Shown here piece after piece: positions 7,060 to 63,700 of a DNA stretch of 64,000 nt. How positions within the stretch are numbered: the first letter of the stretch is position 1; each line of letters starts with the position of its first letter. The stretch is taken from positions 6,278,707 through 6,342,706 of the forward strand of contig OZ037767.1 of assembly GCA_964035545.1 (NCBI GenBank). Reading direction: 5' to 3'. Under the pieces are notes generated by a model that was not told the DNA's origin, did not search any database, and worked only from the letters and a program-made list of their open reading frames with translations. The position numbers and the translations under genes were made by a program. This DNA is from Bugula neritina. Lineage: Eukaryota; Animalia; Bryozoa.

Positions 7060-7525
7060 GGGGGGGGGGGGGGGGGAGAGGGGGTATAACAATGGCTAGC
7101 GATAATAGCTGCCTGGGCAAGTCTGGGGAATTCTTATCTTCCAAGTGACAGTTATGCATCGACTTGTCCCAGAGAGTTCTAGAACATTCAGAACTTCCGT
7201 TTGGATGAATACGTAAATGGTACACAGCGTTATTCATAAGCTTAGGCTTATTGGCCAGCCTTTAAATGGTCTATCTCAGTATATAAAGAGGTGACCATGC
7301 TAGCTCGGAGAGTTTGAGAATAGTTAGGCACTGTAGCATTTTTAGTCTTTGCGCACTGTTATTTTGCTACTTGATCATGTAATTTTTTAGATGACTTTTT
7401 AGTAATAATAAATGGAGTAAGTTTGACCTTTTTAATAGGCAATCCTAAAATGCATGCCTACCCACAGAATACTCTCGCACCTTTCTCAGACAGGGGACAG
7501 ATCCCGAAACAGCTGCTGTCCACAG
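7060..7525 (+). mobile_element. Probable LTR-retrotransposon 3' end: polypurine tract followed by LTR-like promoter
   Basis: G-rich purine tract 7060-7084 abutting tataac (resembles a TGTAAC LTR start), heat-shock element TTCtaGAAcaTTC 7177-7189, ATTGG ~7250, TATATAAA 7280-7287, AATAAA 7407-7412. The 3' boundary is uncertain. Confidence 0.45.
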
Positions 7526-7528
7526 ATT

Positions 7529-7530
<2 letters not shown>

Positions 7531-7620
<90 letters not shown>
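7531..7620. repeat. (TA)n microsatellite
   Basis: Directly visible. Confidence 0.97.
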
Positions 7621-7621
<1 letters not shown>

Positions 7622-7740
7622 TTATGTAAATATACACTAAAATATACCTTGCTGATTACGTTAAATGCATCAGAGGCTGTAGCTATACACATGACGATAA
7701 AAACTATTTTTATTTCGGTCTATGTAGCACAGTCAGGCTA
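7621..7740 (-). pseudogene. Relic of intron 1 of a further, deleted defensin-like gene copy
   Basis: Matches ~9944-10070 (ttgctgat..gttaaatgcatcaga..ctgtagct..acatga.gataaaaactatttttatttc); no exons retained. Confidence 0.65.
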
Positions 7741-12887: not shown

Positions 12888-13098
12888 GTTGGATCTGTAT
12901 TCTACAACACACAGCTAGAATAAGCTTTCTTTTAAACACTGGTTGAATTACTGTAGACATATAACATAAAAATATAAAATGTCAACTGCTTGTTTAAAGT
13001 TGATATATGTGTGCAAGCATGCGTGCGTGTGCTCACACATAACTACATACTAAAAAATATACTGCCCTGAATATGTTAAATCAATTAGAAATTACAGC

Positions 13099-13101
<3 letters not shown>

Positions 13102-13176
<75 letters not shown>
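13102..13176. repeat. (TA)n microsatellite in intron 1 of peptide gene C
   Basis: Directly visible. Confidence 0.97.
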
Positions 13177-13184
<8 letters not shown>

Positions 13185-13393
13185 ACAATCACAATAGTAT
13201 GTGTGCAGCATAAGTATACAGCAATTAATTTAATCAATTTCAAATTGTTTCATGGAAACACATGGTTTGTCATCCTGATAGAAATTTATTCACACCAGTT
13301 CCACTTGGAGTGACTATCTAGAATAATCTGTTTATCCTGAATATATGTTTATATCGTTAATCTAGCACAGTAGAAAAACATTTGGTTTCTTAC

Positions 13394-17854: not shown

Positions 17855-20800
17855 ATGGACTTGTTGGACTCCAAACTGCTTGTTAGTAGTTTAACGAGTT
17901 GCTTAGAAGATTCTTATGAAGGCAATCAGCAGAAGGCTCTGCAACTCTTGCATGCCTCAGCATCTCATAAAGTGAGTTGCAATTGTTCTTTTATCATTTC
18001 TTCTCCGGTTTTAATTAATGTATGATTGTAGTTTATGCTATCATATTGCTGCAACTATTGATGCCAAATAATCTTTTGATCATGTGTATATACCTAACAG
18101 TACTACTATGTGCCAGAGTTTTTATTTATCTCTCATAATCTAATAATTAGAGTTAGTTCTTTCTATGCTGATTCACTGTACGCGTCATTAATTAAAATAC
18201 AGATCTTACAGTATACAGCATAATATTCTAGTCCTGATTATTACCACTGCCTACAAAACTCATTGCAGGAGCTGTTGGACACTAAAGGTATTCTGAGAGC
18301 ATTTCAGTACTTATACAGCAGTAGAACCCAAGACTCCATTTCTGCTGCTTATCTCCTCCTCGCTGCCTTCGCTGACTCTAGTAGAAGTATAGATGCAGTC
18401 CGAGAACTCAGCACAACCTCCCCTTCCTTAGTCGATATTGTGAGTCTGGCTAACTATTTATATACATATATAATCATATAGTACGTATATAATATGATTA
18501 TATAGTATATATACATATATAGTCATATAGTACGCATATTATATGATTATATAATATATATATATACTATATAATCATATAGTATATACACTATATGATT
18601 ATAACAGTATGTATGCTATACGTTTATATTATATTTATATAATATATGCTATATGATTATATATGTTTCAGTTCATCTGCCAACTACTATCTACATTTGT
18701 TCAATCAGTAAATGTTAATCTGTTTTTGAAGTTTATGTGACTAAGAAAGACACTGATGCATCATCCAGATAATAATTTACATTTCAATTTGTCATGTTAA
18801 CCACATTTTATAATACCGCTATTGATTAAACATGTTCATCCGCATTTGAAATGAGATTGTCTACTCGTGTCAACATTGTGATAACTCTTATAGAGTGTGC
18901 TACTCAACGGAGTATCAATCAACAGCAAGAGTGGAAATAAAGAGGAGTTATCTCTCCTTCTCCTACATGTAATATTAAACGTTTTGGAACATCAGGCTAT
19001 TGAGGCAAAACAGGATCTTGTCACTGCCAGCCAGTACTACCCCCTCCACCCTTCACTCCTCTGTCTACGCTACTTGCTGCGGTTAGTGCTTCCACAATTC
19101 TTGTATACACAGAGGAGATGTTTCATACGACCATCCAGACTGCTGTTGATGTTTCAGCACATACTCTGTAAACTCTCAGCTTTTTTCCAAAACCTGAACT
19201 CGATGTGTCTAGCTATTACAATAACACATTTATATTTTATTAGTGCTTCAGGCTCTCTTCATAAGGTGTGTGTTTGCTGCCATGGGGGGAGAGGGGGGGA
19301 GTGAAAAAGAGAACCTTACCATTGTATATTTAATATCTGATGTCCTGGATTTATGACATTCACTAGTCAATAATGGAACTAATCAATGTATTACTAAAAA
19401 TATTCAACATTATTTTGGTTTCAATGTATTTAATATTCAGCTAAGCACTTTTTATTCACAGTGTAATATTATTTATTGTTTAATAAACACCATAAAACTG
19501 CTATATATTAATTTGTGTTATCCTACAGGTTAGGCAAGTTGATGTCTGCATGGTGCAGCATGTAAATATTCAACTCTTCCTTTTACTAATTTATTAGAGT
19601 TTCCTAAAATCAAGGCCATTATTGATGTAATTTACAGCTAATTGTTTAGGGATGAGCTTTGTTTTTCATAGGTTAAATTCATTTTCTGTTTGTGCAGTGA
19701 AAATTATTATGACTCGCGTCAAGTTTGGTGGTGGTTGACTTTAAAATTTCTCAAATCTTAGTAGCTGGACCCTCATTTAAAAATTATTTAAAACTTATTT
19801 GAATATTTTATTGTTGTTTTTAGTTCTGCTGAAATAAAGGATTCCATGAAATGGCAGTTGCTAATAACTCGACTGTTTCATGTGACATTTGATCAGGTTT
19901 ATCCTCTCGTAAATCCTGTGGTCTGTCATTCTTCCCCAGAAGGTTATCTGCCACCAGATGAGAGTGATGACGTCACTGATGATGTCACTGATGATGTCAC
20001 TAATACTAGCAAAGGTACTCCATACAGTTTTACTTCACACTGCACACATGAGTTCATCTGGTGCCTAAACTTAGTGGATGAGGAGTTTTTTCTAGCACAT
20101 TTGCACGAGACCTTATGATATAACATGATCTTTGGTCAAACCTTTCTATGAGCCCTCAAACGTTACTCATTGTGTTGGACATGGTTGTGGTGCAATAGGG
20201 AGGGGAAGTTGGTTATGAAAAAGTTAGTTGTTATATAAGAACACACTTGCTTATGCATGAACAGCCAAAAGTGTAGATATACAATTATGTTTGATTCATT
20301 TCTCTACATGTTTATTCTGTGTTTCTAAATAGCTCTTAAGTTTTACATCTTATATACTATGTTGTGTAGACGTGTCAGGAGGTAAAGCGAGGCCTGGGTT
20401 ACCTCAATTTCTGGTTGTTTGCTGCTGGAGAACAATAAAGGAGATCTCTCTTGTGTACGGAGCATTAATGGAGAAAGTTGTACCACAGGCTGGTGATATT
20501 GTCACCCACAAGCAGGTACCCCAGGTGTCATATAACCACTCATGACTCTGCACTCATGATATGAAGCACTCAGCTACCTTACTACACACTCTACCTTGCT
20601 GGTGCTGGGACTACTTCTACCTGCAGAATCTTGACTCAATAAACCAACTACTATCAAACGCTGCAGATAGCAAAATGTTTATTTTGGGTTTCAGGTGACT
20701 TTACAGAGCTAAACAGACTAGTGTTTTAGTACAGTGCTCTCTCCGTAGCTCACAAACCACTTTCTCACAAGACTGTAGAGTCAACACACTATTATTACAG

Positions 20801-26800: not shown

Positions 26801-29800
26801 GTTGTTTGAATTGTATCAAATACAAAACTGTTCATTTAAAATGGACAGAATAAGTTTTTATTTACAAACAAAAACATAATAAAATATATAACAAATAATA
26901 TATTTTGCGGTGGTGAATGCCAGTGGAAGTGGTTGCCCTCAGGGTGGCCAAGATCTTCTGGGCTGAGACGAGCGGGTATGCTGCTCAAAAGAATGTTTTA
27001 TAGGCAGCATACCCTAAGGCAGTGGCAGCTAGACCCACAGCAGCACAAATACCCACTTTTTTTGCTGTGCTGTATTTCTGTAAATAAATTAATTTAATTG
27101 TTACAAGATGAAGAAGTATGATAAAACAAAACAAAGTAGTGGGTGAGCAGTGATATAAGATATGCAGAAGATAAAAGCATACTCCTATACTTACTTCATG
27201 GGTCTGCCACTGCCTTACATCTGCTCGTCTCAGCCGGCCACCCTGCTCGATGGAATAGACTAAGGGATGATGTTTTTCAACCACTTCTACAAATCATGTG
27301 ATACGCTAACAGCATACTATCAATACTTTTATGATATACTAAATGAGCAGCTATGGTGAGAATACTAACATGGATGCTAAATGAAAATTTGGTCATGATG
27401 ACACACTGGAATATTTTCCTAACCTATTGTTAGCACATTCAGACGTTCAACACTGTTACCTTGTTAGTATGTATCTATCAACTTAACATTTAACAACAAA
27501 GCTATTGACTTACCCACTTTTGTGGGAAGATGCCAAACTGGTGTATCCCTTCTGCAGAAGTTGGGTGTATAGGTGACTTGTTCATGCTTCTTGAAGGGAT
27601 ACACCAGTCGGCCCTCTTCCCACAATCTCCAGTGCAGCTGCCTTTCCTTAATGGACCGCACTGTGGCATTCACCACCGCATACGCCAAGATCTCTATAAG
27701 ATATTCACAACAACATGCAATGTCATCACTAGCAAAACATTAAATATGTTTAAATGTGACTATGCTAAAATTATCAAGCAATAACTTATGCAAGCGAGAT
27801 AGTCGTGTCATGGCATGTTCAGCAGTGATAGTTTTAACATTTATACTAATCGTTTTTAAATAATTTGAATGCTTACCGTTCTTTCGAAGCATCCACAATC
27901 TATCACGTAAGTCAACGTTAGTTGGTGGCACTAAAACACATAGTAGTATATTAAGGCATTGCAGTGACTCACCAAACCTGATAATCTAAGTACATGCAGT
28001 CTAGCAATATTACATTATTTGAAACCCTAAAGCAGTGGCAGCTAGTCCAGCAGTAGCAGTTTTTCCAATTTATTCATTTTACTATAATTTTGTAAATAAA
28101 TTAATTGAATTGCTACAAAGCAAAAAGTCACAGCAAGCACTACCATTTGTTTGAACTAAGACTATAAATATAAAAGATACTTACTGTAGTAATCTGCTTC
28201 AGTCGGGATTTGGGGTTCCGGTATAATCAGATAAGTCTTGGCACTGTTAGCATGCATGGTGGAGTTGGTGGGTGGGATTTCTTTCTCCTCTGGCACCATT
28301 TTCACCTGACCCTGTTTATAGCATGATGACGACATGGTTTTCCGGGGAATTAGTATACAGGAGGTTTTATAGTCTGATGAGTTTGCTAAAAAGTACACAT
28401 GAGTCAATTAAACTACGAATAAAGCATTTTATACACTTACAATCAAATATTATGATTAATTATTATCAATTGACTATAGCTTAAAATTGAGACTAAGCGA
28501 ATAGTGGTCACTACAGATATTAGAAAAATTACTGCTATTTTAAGCATATTAGAGCCATTAAAATTTAATTTTGTCTTTTCCAATAAATAAAATATATTTT
28601 TTAGTAGATATTTTATATTCTTACCTTGCTAGCTTTGACGATCAAGTTCGACTGATTCTTCATCAAAATCTGTCTCCTTTTATATGAAAAAGAACAATCG
28701 GAAGACAATCGAAACTTTTTAATTGGCCGGTAATGGCTTCAAGGTTTACTTGTAAACACCTTATTGGACAGCAATTTTATTCAAGAATTTTTCTCCTCTG
28801 CTCGTAAATTCGTGAAACCATAAAATAATTCTAACAATGTTGCATTGTCATAAGTTTATGTAGAAAATCATGCAACAATTTCAAAAATATTTGAGTTTAG
28901 CCAATAGATTTTTTTCTTCACCTTTAGACATTAATTTTATGTTTATTTTTCTCAATTGCACTAAATAATAGTCAACAATAAAGTAATAATAATATTGCCA
29001 CACTCCTAATACAAATTGTGATATTATATTGATCCACCTCTACTGCTCTTACAGTATTAAATGGCTTATTTTATTTATTCTTATTTTATCCACATACTGT
29101 TTTCAGGTGTCCTTTGATATTGCAGAAATTGTATGTAGAGTTCTTGTATCTGCAGTCATTTGATGAATGATTTAATGTGCCACAGCAATAAAAAGTTTGT
29201 TGAGGCTGTTGGTCGTGTTTTTTGCTAAATTTTCGGTCTGTGTCCACCACAGTTCCAATGCCTCCAGAAAATGTGAAATCTTTATCTTAAGTTTGAACCT
29301 CGAGTTTAGTTCAGCTTCATTTCTTACTGAAGAAATGAATCATTTCATTCATCTTATTGTTCATTCATTGAAGAGAAATCACAAGTCGTCGAATTCTGGA
29401 AATTAGTTCAGGGATTGTCTCTCCCAGTTTTCTTTTTATGTCAACCCATAATCTGTCTCTTTCTCTGATGATTAAAGTTTTTTTCGGTTGTGCTGTCTGT
29501 CCGTGTAATTGTGAATATTATCTATTGATAACTTGATTGTGGGTAGTGGTAAGTGACATATTGTCTCCAAGGTGAAGGTCAAACGTTGTATTCATGTTAC
29601 TTTGCTCTTTGAATCTTTGGGCTCACTCTAATAGATGTTTTATCCATTCTTCTGTAGTGCAACAGCTACTGTAGAAGTTAGTGGAAGCAATAAATGACCT
29701 TCTCTAAACTGCATCAGCAATTGATTTTTTTATTAATTATATGTATATATATAATGATAACATCGCTTTATATGTTATGAATTAAAAGCTGTTGCTCATC

Positions 29801-32666
29801 TGTTGGATATAATAATATATTCTCTAAAGTTTCAAATATTTTGCATTGTTGGGAGTTATATAACCTCGCTTGGATTTCTTGTAGTTTGCTGATGTAATTT
29901 CTAAGAAGGTGTCTGTTGGGGAAAAGCTAGAAGTTGGACTCGCTGAGTTGATATATCACAACTGTCAGCAGTACTGCCCAATCAGTAGATGCCACTTGTC
30001 TCTTCTACGTCTGCTAGTCAACTGTGTGAGTATTTCAAACAAGTTTAAATCATGATGCTGTGTATTAACGGGCAAGTTTGTACTCGCTATTCCTGTGAGA
30101 AAACCCCTGGCGGAAAGGGTTTTGTTAAATCGGGCTAAGGACTTATTCAGATGGAGCACAAGAGCAATTATGACTGGATGCTTTTCCTAACATCACCAAT
30201 GGCCTTTGTCAGGGCTCGAATCCATGACTTCATGCTTACTAGTTGAATGCTCTAACCCCTAGACCACGGTTGCTCCCTTGCCCTGCATTAATATTTTTAG
30301 TCAAATTGAAAAATTAGATATTTTCGAAGATACTTGAAAGTATTTACTGTTCTAGTCGTCATAAGGTCATAAGGTGTATGAAGTGTAGTGATTAGCTGGT
30401 TTTTAGATGTTATGCTGTGCTTCAAGTTGAGCTTTGTAAAATTATGAGCTGTGTTGGTTTTAGAAAAACCACTACAATTTCTGTAACTCTTTTTGAGTTG
30501 AAGTAAAGTTTATTCAACAATGTGGAACCACAGTAATACATATTGTTGTGCTCTCTATAAAAGCACCTTTTTCGGTGACTGTGAAGTTATATAACCGCTT
30601 GCTCTAATATTTTGTAATGTTGAGCAAATTTAGTGTGGTTTGAGATGTGAAATTAGCAATTGTTTTCACTAAAATTCATTGCTGGCTATTGAAAGTGCCT
30701 AGTAAAATACAGCCCTTCATTTGTGGTGACAGAGTTATGAGTAAAGATTTTTTGCAGTTGTCTAAAGATCACAGCTTCTTCATACCAGGTTTACAAGAAA
30801 TAACGGAGCGAGTTTACGAGCTGTTACGTGGTGATGAGCTGGGAGTTGAAGAACAAGAAACTTGTGTAAACATTGTGAAATCTATTAGCACTAATCTAAT
30901 AGTTGCTTTATCTTCTTATGGTAAACATTACTCACTCTTTTCTCATAATGGTGAAATTAATTTTATATAAAAATTGCAGTGGATGAGAGATCAAAACTGA
31001 ACATGACTTGTTTTTTCTAAAGCTATCTTATTTTGCCATACTCGAGGATGACTTGGGCAGTCAACTGTACTGAACCAATAAAGCTGGATGTCACATTTTC
31101 CTTTTTATAGATGATATACAGAACACAGCTAATAACTCTACATTTTCGAGTTTCTGTGGCAGTTGTGTTCTCCTGTTGTTTTCTCATGATGATTGTATTA
31201 GAACTCTGGCTTCCGATATAACCTGCACCTTTATGGCTCAGCGCAATCTTTCAACACAAACATGTAAGTAATGCTCACCGTCATGTCCTGATCGGGTGAC
31301 TGGTCAAAATTGTAAATAATACTAACGGAAAAATCCTGATAATCTACCGGTTGGTTTAGAGACAACTCCAAGTTTGTCTATTTCATCAACTTTAATCACT
31401 AATTATACTACAATCATTACTTCTAATTGAAGTATTCAGTATTATTTTAGTTCTATAACATTATTTTAGCATTGTCACCCCATGATGTTCTTCCAATGCT
31501 GTTTGAGTGGATGCGTTCATGTCCCATACCCAAACCAGAAGTCCTGCGTATATGGAAGGAGTGGTTAGAGGACCCTGCATTATGGTCAGCTGATGATTCA
31601 GCAAATGATAACCCTGTGAGTATCTTACATCATTACTGAAATGTGCAATAATTATATAGTATGTAGTAGTGTCACAGTGATATCTTTCTTTGCATATGGC
31701 TAAACAAATTAGTTGTAGCAACGGTTTATATATTTTGTTGCTGTGGACAATTTATAAGATAAATACTTTTAATTACGCAATCTGAAAGATGTGCAAATGC
31801 AAATAAAAGCAAGATATTTTTGATAGTATGGGCATAGATATATTTTTTGCTATAGAGAGTATTAATATTGATGACAATGGTTATTGAGTGAAACTTCGAC
31901 ATGTGCTTTATTTATGTCTTGGTTTTGAAAACTGATATTACTAAAATTAAAAGTTAACTAATTGTTATTAGATTAACCCACTTCCTGGAAGTGCCACAAC
32001 CATAAATTGTAATTTCTTTCTGATGCGCATTTTTAAGAAAAAATGCCTCACTATATGGAAGTAAATAACTAAGTGATTAGCAAAAAATTCATGTGGACAA
32101 ATTATTTCAATTCATCTTATTCAAAGTTCTTGATTGCTTGGCATTGGCTGGAAAAGTTTCTTCTGTGTAGCAAAATTCGAAGTTAAATCAATTTACCACC
32201 GAAATTGCTTCAACACTATTAAGATTGGAGTTTTAACCTGCTTCAGTATCTCGTAGAGTTTAGACTGTTGTATCTTTTATGGTGGTTTTGAAACCCGACA
32301 CTATCAAGTTCCTAAACTAACTCATCCATGTGAATACGAAATGATTTTTCAGGTTTTTTATTTTAATTCTACCAAGAAAAATTGTTTCCAAAAGACTTGG
32401 CAACATAGTGTTGTGTAAATGTGAAATGGGTTTCTTTAATTACAATCTTTTATTTTAGTTGATTATATAATGTGCTGTTATTTGCGGAGTTTTCTCAGTC
32501 TTCTACATGTTATCAAAGCTGTTTCAGGTTGCATACTTTTCATTTGTGTTTGCAGGATGACGACGAAAGCAAACTGTTCAGCAAGTGTCAAGGGAGCCTA
32601 CTATGTGACCCAGAATATTTTTTCTCAATTCTTAAGAGCAGTTATAACGCCTTTCGCAATGCTTAA
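17855..32666 (+). CDS. THADA: THADA / Trm732-like tRNA 2'-O-methylation regulator (DUF2428), ~1000 aa as modelled
   Basis: Exons 17855-17971, 18269-18439, 18894-19081, 19824-20014, 20370-20515, 21252-21364, 21750-21970, 22605-22756, 23321-23479, 24019-24179, 24262-24440, 24769-24862, 25300-25619, 25891-25994, 29885-30025, 30758-30920, 31111-31263, 31470-31615, 32556-32666 join in phase. Hallmark motifs SSPEG, CCWRTIKE, HRGAFE, TRRSAGLP, VHSLNVLRALF, WPVRNASTLLFSA, NSLHGLLLQ. Exons after 25619 are less certain. Confidence 0.9.
18465..18665. repeat. TA-rich degenerate tandem/palindromic repeat (tatataatcatatagta...atatgattata)
   Basis: 3-4 diverged ~50-bp units in a THADA intron. Confidence 0.7.
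22251..22470 (-). mobile_element. tRNA-derived SINE
   Basis: Head gggagcagccgtggtctagggtctagagcg...ttagtaa...ggcttcaaacccc; tail ...ctcacagggatggtgactataaac. Confidence 0.8.
22956..23160 (-). mobile_element. tRNA-derived SINE (diverged)
   Basis: Homologous to 22251-22470. Confidence 0.7.
24525..24675. mobile_element. Small MITE-like element
   Basis: ~34-bp imperfect terminal inverted repeats gcagtaatggagaaattgaga / tctcaatttctccactactgc. Confidence 0.55.
25027..25177 (+). mobile_element. tRNA-derived SINE, 3'-truncated
   Basis: ggagcagccgtggtttaaggg...cttagtaaac...gggttcaaa...gtgccccacctgaataagtcctt, opposite orientation to the other copies. Confidence 0.7.
26906..26984 (-). other. Structured 3'UTR element complementary to the gene's own CDS
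   Basis: Five perfect antisense blocks (11, 13, 10, 14, 17 nt) to 27004-27014, 27223-27235, 27236-27245, 27278-27286+27514-27518 and 27664-27680, in nested order. Confidence 0.85.
26985..28335 (-). CDS. Uncharacterised 189-aa protein with C-terminal tail anchor; gene nested antisense in a THADA intron
   Basis: Coding exons 28335-28185, 27930-27877, 27693-27514, 27286-27195, 27077-26985, all with gtaag donors and in-phase joins: MSSSCYKQGQ...EADYY M PPTNVDLRDRLWMLRKN E ILAYAVVN...WHLPTKV E VVEKHHPLVY...QWQTHE KYSTAKKVGICAAVGLAATALGYAAYKTFF*. Non-coding exon 1 at 28653-28625; AATAAA at 26862-26857. Confidence 0.8.
28021..28120 (-). pseudogene. Degenerate duplicate of the nested gene's last exon inside its intron 2
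   Basis: accctaaagcagtggcagctag...tgtaaataaattaatt.aattg.tacaa matches 27011-27106; acceptor AG mutated to AA. Confidence 0.7.
28625..28770 (-). promoter_or_regulatory. TATA + initiator promoter of the nested gene
   Basis: TATAAAA starting 28684, 31 nt upstream of the A of a TCAGT initiator (28653); CCAAT at ~28726-28722 and ~28767-28763; inverted gtttac/gtaaaca forkhead-like pair at ~28744-28758. Confidence 0.7.
29190..29600 (-). mobile_element. Possible decayed retrotransposon gag-like fragment
   Basis: Stop-interrupted frame containing RDRLWVDIKRKLGETIPELISRIRRL, resembling the gag Q-x-x-x-E-T/S-I-x-E-x-x-x-R-x-x-x-L motif. Confidence 0.3.
30067..30278 (-). mobile_element. tRNA-derived SINE
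   Basis: Head gggagcaaccgtggtctaggggttagagc...tagtaag...ggattcgagccc; same body as 22251-22470. Confidence 0.8.
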
Positions 32667-60700: not shown

Positions 60701-63700
60701 TTTAAAACTCAGTTTATGCTTGGAATTCAGGATTCACCTACTCACCCTAGACCTATCAGTGCAGTTGTAAAGACAACTGAAGCTGGAGAAAAAGTGATTA
60801 TGGATGGTACAAAGATGATTGGTCGACTTGTAACAAACACACCTAAGGTTCTCACACGGTTATCATAAAATATTGATTAACTATAAGCGGTTTGATGATC
60901 GAGTTCCAGAAAAAAAAAAATTCTGGACGTTTAACGTTAACTCAATTCTAAATATATTCTTGGTTTTATTTTGACTCTGAGTATTGAGGTTGTTAAATCA
61001 TTGTATTATATAAACTGTATTTTTAATGTTAAGAGTGAACATCAAGCTGCAACTTCGTAATGATAGAATCCATTTAAAGGGTGAAATGTTTGAATCTGTT
61101 TGTCTACATACCGTCTGAAATCAGTTTACTTTTTACAAGATTCTTGCAGAGAACATCTTTAGCTTTCCTTTTTATTTTGACTCCGAATATTAAGGATGTT
61201 GAATAATTATCTTACATAAAATATATTTTTTAATGTCAAATACATAATCAAGCTGTAAATTTAAAATAATAGAATCCATTTAAAGGGCAAAATGTTTGAC
61301 TCAGCTTGTCTCTATAGGTGATAGCTACCTCTAGCCCCATGAGGAAGGAATCACAGTCTGTCACTAGCAAACCATCAGGGAAAATAAAAGTGGACATTGT
61401 CAGAACCAGCTCCAACTCTGGAACATCTTCTGGCAGCCAGTCCGGCTCTCTCACAGATATAAAGCAGATAACTTTGCAAGATTCTCCCAACTGTAACCAG
61501 ACGTTACCTGCAGTGTCATTACCTGTGGTAATTGTTTTAGTAGTCTCTGTTTTCTTCTTCATATGTAATTAATATGGCGTCTGCTACTTTTCATTATATT
61601 TTATGTTGTCATTATAATCCAAGTAACATAGGTGACTGGTGCTGTGTACTAGTATAGTTTTAATTTCACCCTGTTGTCACCAGTATATTTGAGTCTTTAG
61701 TGTTATTTATCTGATATTATTGCATGCATAGCATCACTAGATGGTTTCAACTCTAGAGTATTTTCTTACAGGGCTCTACATCTCCGACGGTAAAGCAGCG
61801 AAGACCTAATATTGCAAAACAGCAGAAAATTGTGGCTCAGAGTCAGCAAGCTGCAGCCACAGCTGTCATGCAGACAGCACAAGGTAAGGGTCTGAATCAA
61901 CATTACTCATGGGTCATTTTACTTAATTTAGTACACACTGGAAATTTCCAGTTTTTAGCTATTTTTCACAATTTAACTGCTAATGAACATGGGTTTTTGC
62001 CCAAAACTAGTAAAATATCAATAAATGCACCTAAATAATCAAGGTTTTTCTTAATTTTGCTTGATTTCCCATGTTTTTTCCTATTTACTTAGCTAATTTG
62101 TATTGCGGACCGTTACTAAAAAACCATAACGGTTCGCAATCAAAAGTAGCTGAATAATTGGGAATATATGCTAAAATAGCTAAAAACTGGAGATTTCTAG
62201 TGTGTACTAAATTAAGTAAAATGACCCTCATATGTAATACTGTGTGTTATGTTATTATCTCAGCTTTAATTCAGACTTTATCTTACAGCTTTACATCAGC
62301 AACACTTGGCTGCAAGTTTAGCCAATCAGGAGGCCATGTTGCATCACAAAAAAGTAGCGGAAGATCTAGCCAATCAGCAGAAATTGGCTAAGCAACAGCA
62401 GATAGCAGCCATTGCTGCTGAACAGAACGCTGCGTCCCACTTAGCCACGCAGAAGAGACTGATGCAGCAGCAAGTCATAGCCGAGCAGCAGCAACAGCAC
62501 AACATGGCAGCGCGACAGAAGATTGTTCAAATGCAACAGCAGCAACAGACTATAGCCAAGCTGAAGCAGCAACACCAGCAGCAGGCAAATCAGTTGGCAT
62601 TAGCACAGCATCAGCAAAAGGTCACTCAAGTTCAACACCAAATTCAGCAGCAGAAGTTGGCAGCTCAAGTAATGCAGCAGCAATCAGCTCAGCAGCAGAA
62701 AAACATGGTTCAATCGTCACCATCACAGCCAAAGATAGTCATGCAGTCAGCACACAAAAAGTTGTCGCAAGTTTCTAAGCAACAGCTAGCCGCGCAGCAA
62801 CAGACTATGGTGCAGGTTGCTAAGCAACAACTAACTGCGCAGCAACAACAGCATTTATTGCAAACTCAGCAGCATCAGCAAAAGTTGGCAGCAGTGAAAG
62901 CACAGCAGCAGAAGGAGTTGAACGCCAGACAGCATAGAGTTGGCTCTCAGCTCGTCAGTCAGAACTCTTCTCTCATGTCCTCACCATACAGCAGTACTTC
63001 AGCTACTGTCAGTCCAGTTACAGCCGGGCTTTCTCAGCCCAGGTCCAGGTCTCCTGTGGCGGCAACTGCTATAGTGTCTACACCAACTAGTCGAATGTAA
63101 GTAACTGTGTGTCCTAGTCTTATCTATTAGAGCTCTGTGAATTACCTGCCACATGAAACGAATTTTTGTATGGGCCATTAGCTAACAGAGTAACAGCTTA
63201 TTTTCATATAACTTCTGGAACTTTGTTGTATACACTGTGCTGATGCAATGTTTGCCCTAGGTATTATCAGCCCAACCTGTACTTCGGGCACAGGCATAGG
63301 TAAGTGTATGCTGTGATTTTCAGCCTTGATTTGCTATAATTTGTTTCCTGTTGCTTCAAAATCTGAAATTTGAGTTATCCTTGCTCGACTACTACTGTTG
63401 TTGCTTGCCCAGAATAAAAGCACTAATACGGCTAGGAACTTGAAATAACTAGCCCAGCCGGACATATGTAATTTGTTCAAAACTTGTTAAGAGTTAAATT
63501 GTAATCTTATGATTGATTGTATATAATGAATTTGGTTTATATTGCAGTCCACCCGGAGTGTTTCCATATGCAGTGAATTCACATTTGTCACCAGTCTCGC
63601 CAACGGTCAGTTTAAAAAAATATGGAGGATAATTTATGAATATAGTAATTCATTAAAAAATGTCTTCTGAAATCTGCATCCTTCAATTACAGATAACATC

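Follow-up and report, generated by a model that had tools for sequence, protein, structure and literature searches.

Animal coding sequences are generally considered to avoid strong, conserved secondary structure, and known cis-regulatory mRNA structures are typically small and located in UTRs. The hpRNA genes of Drosophila (hpRNA1, Nmy/Tmy) yield endogenous siRNAs and derive from inverted or retro-duplication of young multi-copy families, arising as inverted copies of a gene's own processed CDS; the hpRNAs described so far do not code for protein, pair over hundreds of base pairs and target other loci. Exonic hairpins of the DGCR8 mRNA are processed by Drosha, and the classic exon-complementary sequences of ADAR substrates are usually intronic and serve a single site. 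Hepatitis delta virus and the Obelisks are rod-like coding RNAs that exist as small circular replicons, and the cyclisation of flavivirus genomes is a long-range, end-to-end pairing. In Staphylococcus aureus icaR, 5'UTR-3'UTR pairing is reported to control translation (PMC3868564).

Here we describe a Bugula neritina gene on the minus strand of the window (the whole 64-kb stretch of DNA that was analysed), in which approximately the last 400 bases of the spliced mRNA are predicted to adopt a single nested fold of very high stability, an unusual property in a protein-coding message. With ~140 bp in total that span the stop codon and roughly two thirds of the ORF, apparently kept together with the protein and decaying when the gene dies, this structure would differ from the known cis-regulatory ones. 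Like the Drosophila hpRNAs, the transcript folds onto an inverted copy, since its UTR is colinear with the reverse complement of its own spliced CDS; unlike them, it carries a constrained ORF, and its pairing is a mosaic of 7-17-bp helices and local hairpins. Of the properties that define an hpRNA, it has the inverted-copy arms and lacks both a near-perfect duplex of at least 100 bp and a non-coding transcript. As in flavivirus genomes and in icaR, the RNA would be closed by pairing between a box in its 3'UTR and a region far towards its 5' end; where those systems use one short UTR-UTR interaction, here coding exons are joined to four UTR boxes, and the gaps are filled by four further hairpins. 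The coding exons lie in duplexes of 15-33 bp, as in ADAR substrates, and the genome contains A_deamin-domain genes. The ORF inside a highly self-complementary, branched-rod RNA resembles hepatitis delta virus and the Obelisks, whereas the present RNA comes from a spliced multi-exon nuclear gene with ~20 chromosomal copies.

The gene model has six exons with GT-AG introns and predicts a 180-aa ORF with a C-terminal membrane anchor, in agreement with the intact coding frame and the exon numbering of the original prediction. Exon 1 (28625..28700; all features are on the minus strand) has a GT donor at 28624 and a provisional 5' end. It is probably 5'UTR with a short upstream ORF, which starts at an ATG at 28663 and meets a stop early in exon 2; this region is 86-90% conserved in paralogues L002-L005. 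Exon 2 (28185..28385) was placed by its AG/GT borders and the main ORF, whose ATG is at 28335, and exon 3 (27877..27930) by its AG/GT borders and its agreement with the frame. Exon 4 (27514..27693) contains 59 full codons and is followed by exon 5 (27195..27259) and the coding part of exon 6 (26985..27077), which ends with the stop codon at 26985-26987; an AATAAA polyadenylation signal is located at 26857..26862. Exon 6 reads as a ~19-residue hydrophobic stretch followed by four residues and the stop, so that the predicted product has a single hydrophobic segment at its extreme C-terminus, as expected of a tail-anchored membrane protein. A duplicate of exon 6 in intron 2 was rejected as an in-frame alternative last exon, as it meets a stop after two codons in the correct exon 2 phase.

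For folding, the exons were joined by their coordinates, and both the gene model and the fold are predictions. The whole domain is closed by helix P, in which 27664..27680 of exon 4 forms 17 perfect bp (100% complementary) with the UTR box P' (26906-26922). Three further boxes, Q' (26927-26933), R' (26940-26949) and X' (26961-26973), form helices Q (7 bp), R (10 bp) and X (13 bp); the 5' arms of R and X lie in exon 5, and helix Q crosses the exon 4/5 junction, with most of its bases in exon 4 and the last one in exon 5. Hairpin A (27630..27663) directly abuts helix P in exon 4. It corresponds to an 8-bp stem claimed in the original prediction, which we found at 27663-27656 / 27637-27630 with one G-U pair and which the MFE structure extends to 9 bp including two G-U pairs. 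Hairpin B (27520..27625), also in exon 4 and entirely coding, has 33-nt arms (27520-27552 and 27593-27625) around a 40-nt loop. The arms are 88% complementary, with 29 Watson-Crick pairs, one G-U pair and three mismatches: 11 perfect bp are followed by a short imperfect stretch and then by a G-U pair plus 16 perfect bp. This confirms the proposed inverted repeat with its 11 + 16 perfect bp, and the MFE structure pairs it as 11 + 5 + 15 bp. Hairpin C joins exon 5 to exon 6 across intron 5, and the proposed 14-bp stem between 27204-27217 and 27015-27028 is perfect at all 14 positions. The 7-mer said to extend this stem exists, but it shares two bases with the core, and the MFE structure instead pairs 27198..27217 with 27015..27038, inside the membrane-anchor codons, as 13 bp, a 4-nt bulge and 7 bp. 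Hairpin D (26974..27014), which was added by this analysis, pairs the last codons (27004-27014) with the start of the UTR (26974-26984) over 11 perfect bp and has the stop codon in its loop.

A single nested MFE structure holds every one of these hairpins and every exon-UTR helix, and the junctions between P and A, between C and D and between D and X' have zero bases, which bears out the claim that the stems lie between the UTR-paired blocks without crossing. In the resulting model, the four exon-UTR helices would form a central rod from which hairpins A and B branch off sideways and which carries C and D at its tip. The longest unbroken helices are 17, 15, 13, 13, 11, 11 and 10 bp. The strand lengths at the three-way junction are 6, 0-1 and 0 nt, and a hammerhead-type ribozyme or three-way junction was ruled out by eye on these lengths.

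This fold is far more stable than expected by chance. The spliced region from exon 4 to the UTR (404-428 nt) folded at -219/-220 kcal/mol, with a z of -14 against dinucleotide shuffles, and contained seven unbroken helices of at least 10 bp, compared with a mean of 0.35 (maximum 2) in shuffles. Exon 4 alone reached -80.2 kcal/mol (z -5.9; equalled by none of 200 shuffles), and the unspliced region from exon 5 to the UTR -134.8 kcal/mol (z -8.6; equalled by none of 100). When synonymous codons were shuffled while the protein was kept, the CDS fold weakened from -139.7 to -105.3 (sd 6.5; z -5.3), and the fold with the native UTR from -220.1 to -143.4 (sd 8.1; z -9.4). Among 110-nt folds on this strand of the window, hairpin B, at -55.3 compared with a mean of -17.1 (sd 6.5), is the most stable apart from (AT)n low-complexity palindromes.

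Hairpin B invites comparison with miRNA precursors. It is a 33-bp imperfect stem in an mRNA, and in the truncated copies described below its arms are more conserved than its loop, a possible resemblance to the DGCR8 and pri-miRNA hairpins and to the imperfect stem of about three helical turns expected of an animal miRNA precursor. On the other hand, it matches no curated miRNA family and has a 40-nt loop, and in this gene its arms are also constrained by the protein. An Rfam scan of the window, to which intron-spanning structures are invisible, gave no hit at gathering score. At permissive thresholds, hairpin B matched mir-4818 at 25.1 bits (92 needed) and MIR1222 at 21.2 bits (90 needed), reflecting a generic hairpin shape only.

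The structure is retained in other copies of the gene. Intact copies were defined as those with an open exon 4-6 frame, namely L001, L002, L003 and L004 of this genome and L023 of an independent Logan assembly. Despite 16% divergence, the energies of these five lie between -215 and -223 kcal/mol (z -13 to -15). Five broken copies, which carry stops or frameshifts or have the UTR deleted, reach only -107 to -129 kcal/mol (z -1 to -3.5), with hairpins B, C and D weakening in step. Because the same arrangement is present in L023, it is not an assembly artefact. Between L003 and this gene, 65 of 404 positions are different, and the two fold equally well (-220.0 and -219.3), whereas 65 randomly placed changes gave -141 (sd 11, best -175), or -161 (sd 10, best -182) when the paired and unpaired counts were kept. 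Divergence is 11% in paired and 27% in unpaired columns, and four pairs are altered on both sides with pairing retained. The compensatory pairs lie in helix P and the upper stem of hairpin B; helix P contains one compensatory U-A to C-G change in L003, L004 and L023 and wobble variants in L002, L004 and L023, and each of its single changes makes a wobble pair or lies at the helix end. Hairpin A is kept or stronger in the L003 group (-12.9 to between -15.1 and -21.6 kcal/mol), hairpin B is at -56.1 kcal/mol here and at -49.5 to -53.5 in the other intact copies with 35 differences in 106 nt, and hairpin D is at -19.5 kcal/mol in all five.

Across the copies, there are compensatory changes and intact copies keep the fold, but family-wide covariation is thin, with most stem pairs invariant. 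RNAalifold on 24 family copies gave a poor consensus (-9.3 kcal/mol, two covarying pairs) because decayed copies and register shifts dominate, and we therefore relied on per-copy folds and substitution simulations. Synonymous divergence of the stem codons between L003 and L023 is 0.088, about equal to the intron divergence of the same pair, so that in this comparison the stems evolve slowly only when set against loop codons.

The UTR itself suggests how the fold arose. The reverse complement of 26906-26984 is colinear with the spliced CDS minus hairpins A-C (64 identical columns, score 42.5), whereas the same alignment on shuffles gave -1.6 (sd 3.5, maximum 11), and it contains no intron 4 or intron 5 sequence, in keeping with helix Q crossing the exon 4/5 junction. 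This suggests that the proximal 3'UTR began as an inverted copy of the spliced message. The UTR would be a reverse-complement copy of the spliced CDS without precisely the three internal hairpins, which may have been either skipped by the copying polymerase or later lost from an unconstrained copy. An antisense copy without the hairpins would leave gaps that the hairpins fill, which would explain the zero-base junctions, and this gives a concrete, testable mechanism for the gapless tiling of local hairpins and long-range helices.

The family comprises ~20 chromosomal copies, which are clustered, often decayed and so far found only in Bugula-like DNA. An 18-nt core of the hairpin B 3' arm occurs exactly 20 times, always at family loci and in few clusters, with two further one-mismatch chance sites, and the P' box occurs only within the family. 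A transposable element or MITE was ruled out by the low copy number and the lack of genome-wide dispersal. A metagenome scan with an 18-nt degenerate hairpin B pattern returned 120 stretches, all of them chance matches. Intron-less joints between exons 5 and 6 were seen in other family copies, and therefore cDNA-derived pieces have entered the family. The JGI contig L145, ~89% identical to paralogue L008 over the best match, carries a rearranged array of exon-4 units with no clean gene. In seven truncated copies on contig 5, hairpin B and the P' box remain, whereas all other parts of the fold and the frame of exon 4 are gone. Among them, the hairpin B arms are 94.5% and 100% identical, the loop 90% and the spacer 79.5%; their P' box is identical to that of this gene, has no cis partner left within three mismatches and is a perfect antisense match to exon 4 in L001 and L002. 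Hairpin B and the P' box in these copies fit a stand-alone or trans role better than a pure cis clamp.

The layout of the structure, its excess stability and its persistence in intact copies were computed from the sequence, whereas the existence of the RNA in cells and its mechanism are inferred. The explanation that we favor, giving it about an even chance of being right, is that the hairpins are parts of one selected RNA domain that acts in cis on translation or stability. The structure could instead be a neutral relic, in which arms made by recent inverted duplications have not yet decayed or were homogenised by gene conversion and serve no function. A templated origin is indeed likely from the UTR-CDS alignment, and among the C3 copies the stretch running from exon 5 into the UTR is almost the same (86-96% identity, with introns at ~80%); gene conversion may contribute to the conservation of exon 5, exon 6 and the UTR among these copies and could mimic purifying selection there. 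However, the divergence between L001 and L003 is 20% in introns and 31% in exon 4, and yet all helices with exon 4 (P, A and B) hold their energy with compensatory changes where random changes at this divergence would cost 40-80 kcal/mol, and copies with a broken frame have lost the fold, which makes a functionless relic quite improbable. We hold it equally doubtful that the RNA is a structured non-coding RNA whose 180-codon frame is untranslated. Many family copies lack an open frame but retain splice sites or hairpin B, and the protein searches, run exon by exon, are in line with this reading: a Pfam scan gave no significant match, a PDB search no match below E 0.29 and an ESM Atlas search no hit of 0.9 or more, phmmer against 1.84 billion representative proteins returned only three read-through fragments of the same family, and cluster look-ups gave singletons. 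On the other hand, all five copies that fold well have an open frame, with 55 differences and no indels in exon 4, and even distant copies preserve the hydrophobic anchor at the C-terminus, where replacements are conservative. The dN/dS values are all well below 1, at 0.06 (L001-L002), 0.21 (L003-L004) and 0.26 (L003-L023), and at 0.16 in loop codons, which are free of pairing constraint, although all these values come from small substitution counts. Given dN/dS of 0.06-0.26 and the retained fold, protein and RNA both appear constrained; the dual constraint proposed in the original prediction is thus supported by dN/dS, the synonymous-codon shuffles and the L003 simulation.

A stronger competitor, though still somewhat unlikely, is that the domain, through hairpin B and the exon-UTR duplexes, serves mainly as a substrate of dsRNA enzymes. 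Dicer/Drosha-type enzymes would cut it into small RNAs with which the ~20 members of the family are regulated in trans, or ADAR would edit it, and this would make the mRNA the protein-coding counterpart of an hpRNA gene. The resemblance of the UTR to an inverted copy of the gene's own processed CDS and the young, clustered, Bugula-restricted family full of decayed copies are as expected for such a gene, and the genome encodes a Dicer in addition to the A_deamin-domain genes. The truncated copies point the same way, since the hairpin B arms are their best-conserved segments, with the arm-over-loop pattern of small-RNA precursors, and their P' box is unchanged with no cis partner within three mismatches, while matching L001 and L002 perfectly in antisense. 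Against this, the longest unbroken duplexes are 15-17 bp, far under the hundreds of base pairs in known hpRNAs, hairpin B scores far below the gathering scores of the miRNA models, and in the contig-5 10.3-Mb cluster the fold decays along with the ORF, which would be unexpected if small RNAs were the selected product. A combined reading, which we regard as tentative and unlikely, is a bifunctional mRNA that encodes the tail-anchored protein and is also its own hairpin-RNA gene: the exon-UTR duplexes and hairpin B would be diced or edited, small RNAs would police the dosage of this young, amplifying family with the truncated contig-5 copies as trans regulators, and the internal hairpins would have been skipped by a polymerase copying the folded, spliced message.

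If the hairpins are indeed parts of one cis-acting domain, this domain would clamp the reading frame shut and thereby set how easily ribosomes enter or traverse the message and how long it lasts. The gene would offer a natural system for how ribosomes and dsRNA-sensing enzymes handle a heavily paired message, for the domestication of an inverted copy of a gene's own cDNA as a regulatory tail, and for synonymous sites coming under RNA-level selection. Hairpin C is predicted to form also in the unspliced RNA with intron 5 within its loop, and by looping out this intron it may aid its removal. The L003-type genes are shorter, and their helix P begins 5 nt past the likely start codon.

In the 216-Mb assembly to which the window belongs, six exons were predicted on the minus strand for the gene under study (L001), each bounded by canonical GT-AG sites: exon 1 (28625 to ~28700), exon 2 (28185-28385), exon 3 (27877-27930), exon 4 (27514-27693), exon 5 (27195-27259) and the coding part of exon 6, which runs from 27077 down to the stop codon at 26985-26987 and is followed by a UTR carrying AATAAA at 26857-26862. 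The main ORF of the predicted spliced model starts at 28335 and has 180 residues, ending in a ~19-residue hydrophobic segment and four further residues, a layout that, judged from the sequence, is that of a putative tail-anchored membrane protein. An ATG in exon 1, at 28663, starts an upstream ORF of ~24 codons, which closes early in exon 2, before the main start. Exon-by-exon searches of Pfam, PDB and ESM Atlas gave zero matches for any exon, and a phmmer search of 1.84 billion representative proteins with exon 4 as query returned only three read-through fragments, all of the same family; the protein is therefore without a detectable homologue.

From these coordinates we built the spliced RNA and subjected the stretch from exon 4 to the UTR to minimum-energy folding. 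The original prediction held that long coding hairpins fill the loops left by UTR pairing without crossing, and the minimum-energy fold is indeed one nested structure with the stems between the UTR-paired blocks. It is closed by helix P (17 bp, exon 4 with UTR), next to which stand hairpins A and B of exon 4; helix Q (7 bp) spans the exon 4-exon 5 junction, exon 5 is joined to the UTR by helices R (10 bp) and X (13 bp), and hairpins C and D form the tip, with zero-base junctions between P and A, C and D, and D and the UTR box of helix X. The individual stems were recovered as predicted: the 8-bp stem, hairpin A (27663-27656/27637-27630); the 33/33-nt inverted repeat, hairpin B, whose arms (27520-27552/27593-27625) enclose a 40-nt loop and contain 29 Watson-Crick pairs, one G-U and three mismatches, in the order of 11 perfect bp, a short imperfect segment, and the G-U with 16 perfect bp; and the 14-bp stem of exons 5 and 6 across intron 5, hairpin C (27204-27217/27015-27028, 14/14 perfect), which folds as 13 bp, a 4-nt bulge and 7 bp. 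Additionally, hairpin D pairs the last codons (27004-27014) with the first UTR bases (26974-26984) through 11 perfect bp and holds the stop codon in its loop. A diverged duplicate (~76% identical) of the intron 5 end and the first two thirds of exon 6 lies in intron 2 (28024-28118, minus strand) and contains a copy of the hairpin C 3' arm; because it meets a stop two codons in, given the exon 2 phase of the model, it looks like a pseudo-exon, though in the pre-mRNA it could still act as a competing partner of the exon 5 arm.

Exon 4 alone folded to -80.2 kcal/mol (z -5.9), which none of 200 dinucleotide shuffles equalled, the unspliced stretch from exon 5 to the UTR, where hairpin C loops out intron 5, to -134.8 kcal/mol (z -8.6), and the spliced stretch from exon 4 to the UTR to -219/-220 kcal/mol (z -14). 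In this last fold, seven helices run uninterrupted for at least 10 bp, compared with a mean of 0.35 and a maximum of 2 in shuffles. When synonymous codons were permuted with the protein kept, the coding sequence alone reached -105.3 (sd 6.5) versus -139.7 for the native sequence, and with the native UTR -143.4 (sd 8.1) versus -220.1. In a window-wide 110-nt sliding fold of the minus strand (mean -17.1, sd 6.5), hairpin B (-55.3) was outranked only by (AT)n palindromes, and the next ordinary sequence reached only -39.8, in agreement with the claim that neighbouring genes have no comparable stems. Low-complexity (AT)n-type palindromes at 129-341, 7480-7650, 13080-13210 and 18476-18645 dominate inverted-repeat scans of the window.

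Over 20 relatives of the exon 4-UTR stretch are present in the genome. An 18-nt core of the hairpin B 3' arm occurs exactly 20 times, every time at a family locus, so the relatives form a small clustered gene family rather than a transposon. On contig 3, identity to L001 is 95% for L002 (44 kb from L001) and 79% for L003 and L004; L005, which carries a stop in exon 5 and has lost most of its UTR boxes, is a pseudogene. The arrangement is preserved in L023, a contig from the independent Logan assembly that is 92% identical to L003/L004, ruling out an assembly artefact. In seven copies on contig 5 (L006-L012, 10.30-10.37 Mb) the splice sites are retained, and exon 4 is interrupted by stops or by a frameshift of 4 nt. 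Truncated copies lie at 14.56-14.71 Mb of contig 5 (eight: L013 and L015-L021), with single ones on contigs 3 and 7; in these, the exon-4-like part lacks flanking splice sites and has stops in its loop, exon 5 is decayed, and exon 6 and the UTR are well preserved. A JGI contig (L145:10032-10591, ~89% identical to L008 over the best match) carries three tandem exon-4 units spaced ~207 nt apart in one read-through ORF (P0001), the third fused to mid-exon 5, and is a rearranged array rather than a normal gene.

The proposal of dual constraint on protein and RNA was supported on both layers, with small counts, by dN/dS, by the open exon 4 and by synonymous divergence in stems versus loops. The dN/dS was 0.06 for L001-L002 (5 synonymous changes, 1 non-synonymous), 0.21 for L003-L004, 0.26 for L003-L023 and 0.16 for codons wholly within loops; the 55 base differences between L001 and L003 in exon 4 bring in no stop and no indel; and synonymous divergence was 0.09-0.12 in stem codons versus 0.46-0.48 in loop codons. 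Across homologs, the fold is kept in the five copies whose frame is open across exons 4-6 (-215 to -223 kcal/mol, z -13 to -15; hairpins A -13 to -22, B -50 to -56, C -40 to -42, D -19.5) and weakened in five broken ones (-107 to -129 kcal/mol, z -1 to -3.5; B -25 to -42, C -19 to -31, D -5 to -16). Between L001 and L003, 65 of 404 positions have changed, including 35 of the 106 in hairpin B, yet the fold energy is the same. Random placement of L003's changes, same in number and kind, gave -141 (sd 11; best of 150, -175), or -161 (sd 10; best -182) when the paired/unpaired split was kept, and hairpin B alone gave -26 (sd 5.5) versus -52.3 observed. Divergence was 11% in paired columns, 27% in unpaired columns and ~20% in introns.

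The expected covariation was found in part. Helix P shows one clear compensatory change, a U-A pair of L001/L002 that is C-G in L003/L004/L023; its other differences are three wobble variants (U-G in L002, G-U in L004 and L023) and, in L003/L004/L023, a U-to-C or U-to-A change that opens the terminal A-U pair only; in the upper stem of hairpin B, two pairs are altered on both sides with pairing retained, and in hairpin A an A-U replaces a G-U. Most stem pairs are, however, invariant across the family, and RNAalifold over all 24 copies gave a poor consensus. Gene conversion may contribute to the conservation, since exon 5 to UTR is 86-96% identical among contig-3 copies.

Our preferred reading, to which we give about even chances, is a cis-acting domain that would hold the reading frame closed. 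Such a fold would hinder ribosomes or control their access to the message, which it would also protect, and could serve storage or the timing of expression. In L003-type genes the likely start codon is in exon 4 and helix P begins 5 nt downstream; in all intact copies the stop codon is in the hairpin D loop and the anchor codons are in hairpin C, which in the unspliced predicted fold juxtaposes the ends of intron 5. That the conserved structure is instead a neutral relic, or an untranslated structured RNA, seems improbable to a similar degree, as the dN/dS values, the folds of intact versus broken copies and the substitution simulations disfavour these readings.

The main rival, that the duplexes feed dsRNA enzymes, is possible but rather doubtful. 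In seven of the eight truncated contig-5 copies (L017, with a large deletion, was left out), where exon 5 and the splice sites are gone, the hairpin B arms are 94.5% and 100% identical versus 79.5% for the spacer, and the exon 6 anchor frame is 95.7% identical. Their P' box, the UTR side of helix P, is unchanged beside a decayed exon-4-like cis partner; it is confined to this family, and exon 4 of both L001 and L002 contains its perfect antisense match. A_deamin-domain genes and a Dicer are also encoded in the genome. Against this rival, the longest uninterrupted duplex is 17 bp, and no Rfam match reached threshold, those below it being of a generic hairpin kind. The nearest known systems are hpRNA genes, single long-range UTR-UTR clamps like icaR (PMC3868564), exonic Drosha hairpins, ADAR substrates and rod-like coding replicons; the gene has some features in common with each, but for each system open to testing it lacks a defining one. 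We see in it a protein-coding mRNA with an hpRNA-like predicted fold, apparently maintained by selection, in which coding hairpins and CDS-UTR helices would tile gaplessly.

As to the origin of the antisense tail, excising hairpins A, B and C at their bases leaves 80 nt of spliced coding sequence running from P through D, and over its whole length this remainder aligns with the 79 nt of UTR 26906-26984 in reverse complement. The alignment has 64 identical columns and just four indels (3, 4, 5 and 11 nt), scores 42.5 versus -1.6 for shuffles (sd 3.5, maximum 11), and contains no intron 4 or intron 5 sequence. We infer that an inverted copy of the spliced message gave rise to the tail. With the folded RNA as template, a polymerase may have skipped across the bases of the hairpins and left them out; alternatively, palindromes may have been deleted from the tail copy, which was free of coding constraint. 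An RNA-templated origin fits the span of helix Q across an exon junction and the exon 5-exon 6 joints without intron in the contig-5 10.3-Mb cluster (L007:1279-1385, L009:2529-2634, L010:1934-2044 and L012:1551-1662), whose exon 6 part is closer to exon 6 of L001 than to the neighbouring intron-containing one. These pieces stop at the inner helix of hairpin C and look like cDNA-derived insertions or conversions, so cDNA-derived pieces appear to have entered the family. The inverted copy speaks to origin and is no substitute for evidence of later selection.

Lying in the internal loop that separates helices R and X, the 11-nt insertion of the UTR relative to this alignment (26950-26960) holds the palindrome AAGATCTT, is shared by most of the family copies aligned, and could, if the modeled loop exposes it, mediate RNA dimerisation; the same 10-mer, AGATCTTGGC, begins exon 4 (27684-27693). 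Elsewhere in the window, ~30150-30280 (minus) reads by eye like a tRNA-derived SINE head, and the longest ORF is a glutamine-rich open frame of 264 codons at 62306-63100 (plus).
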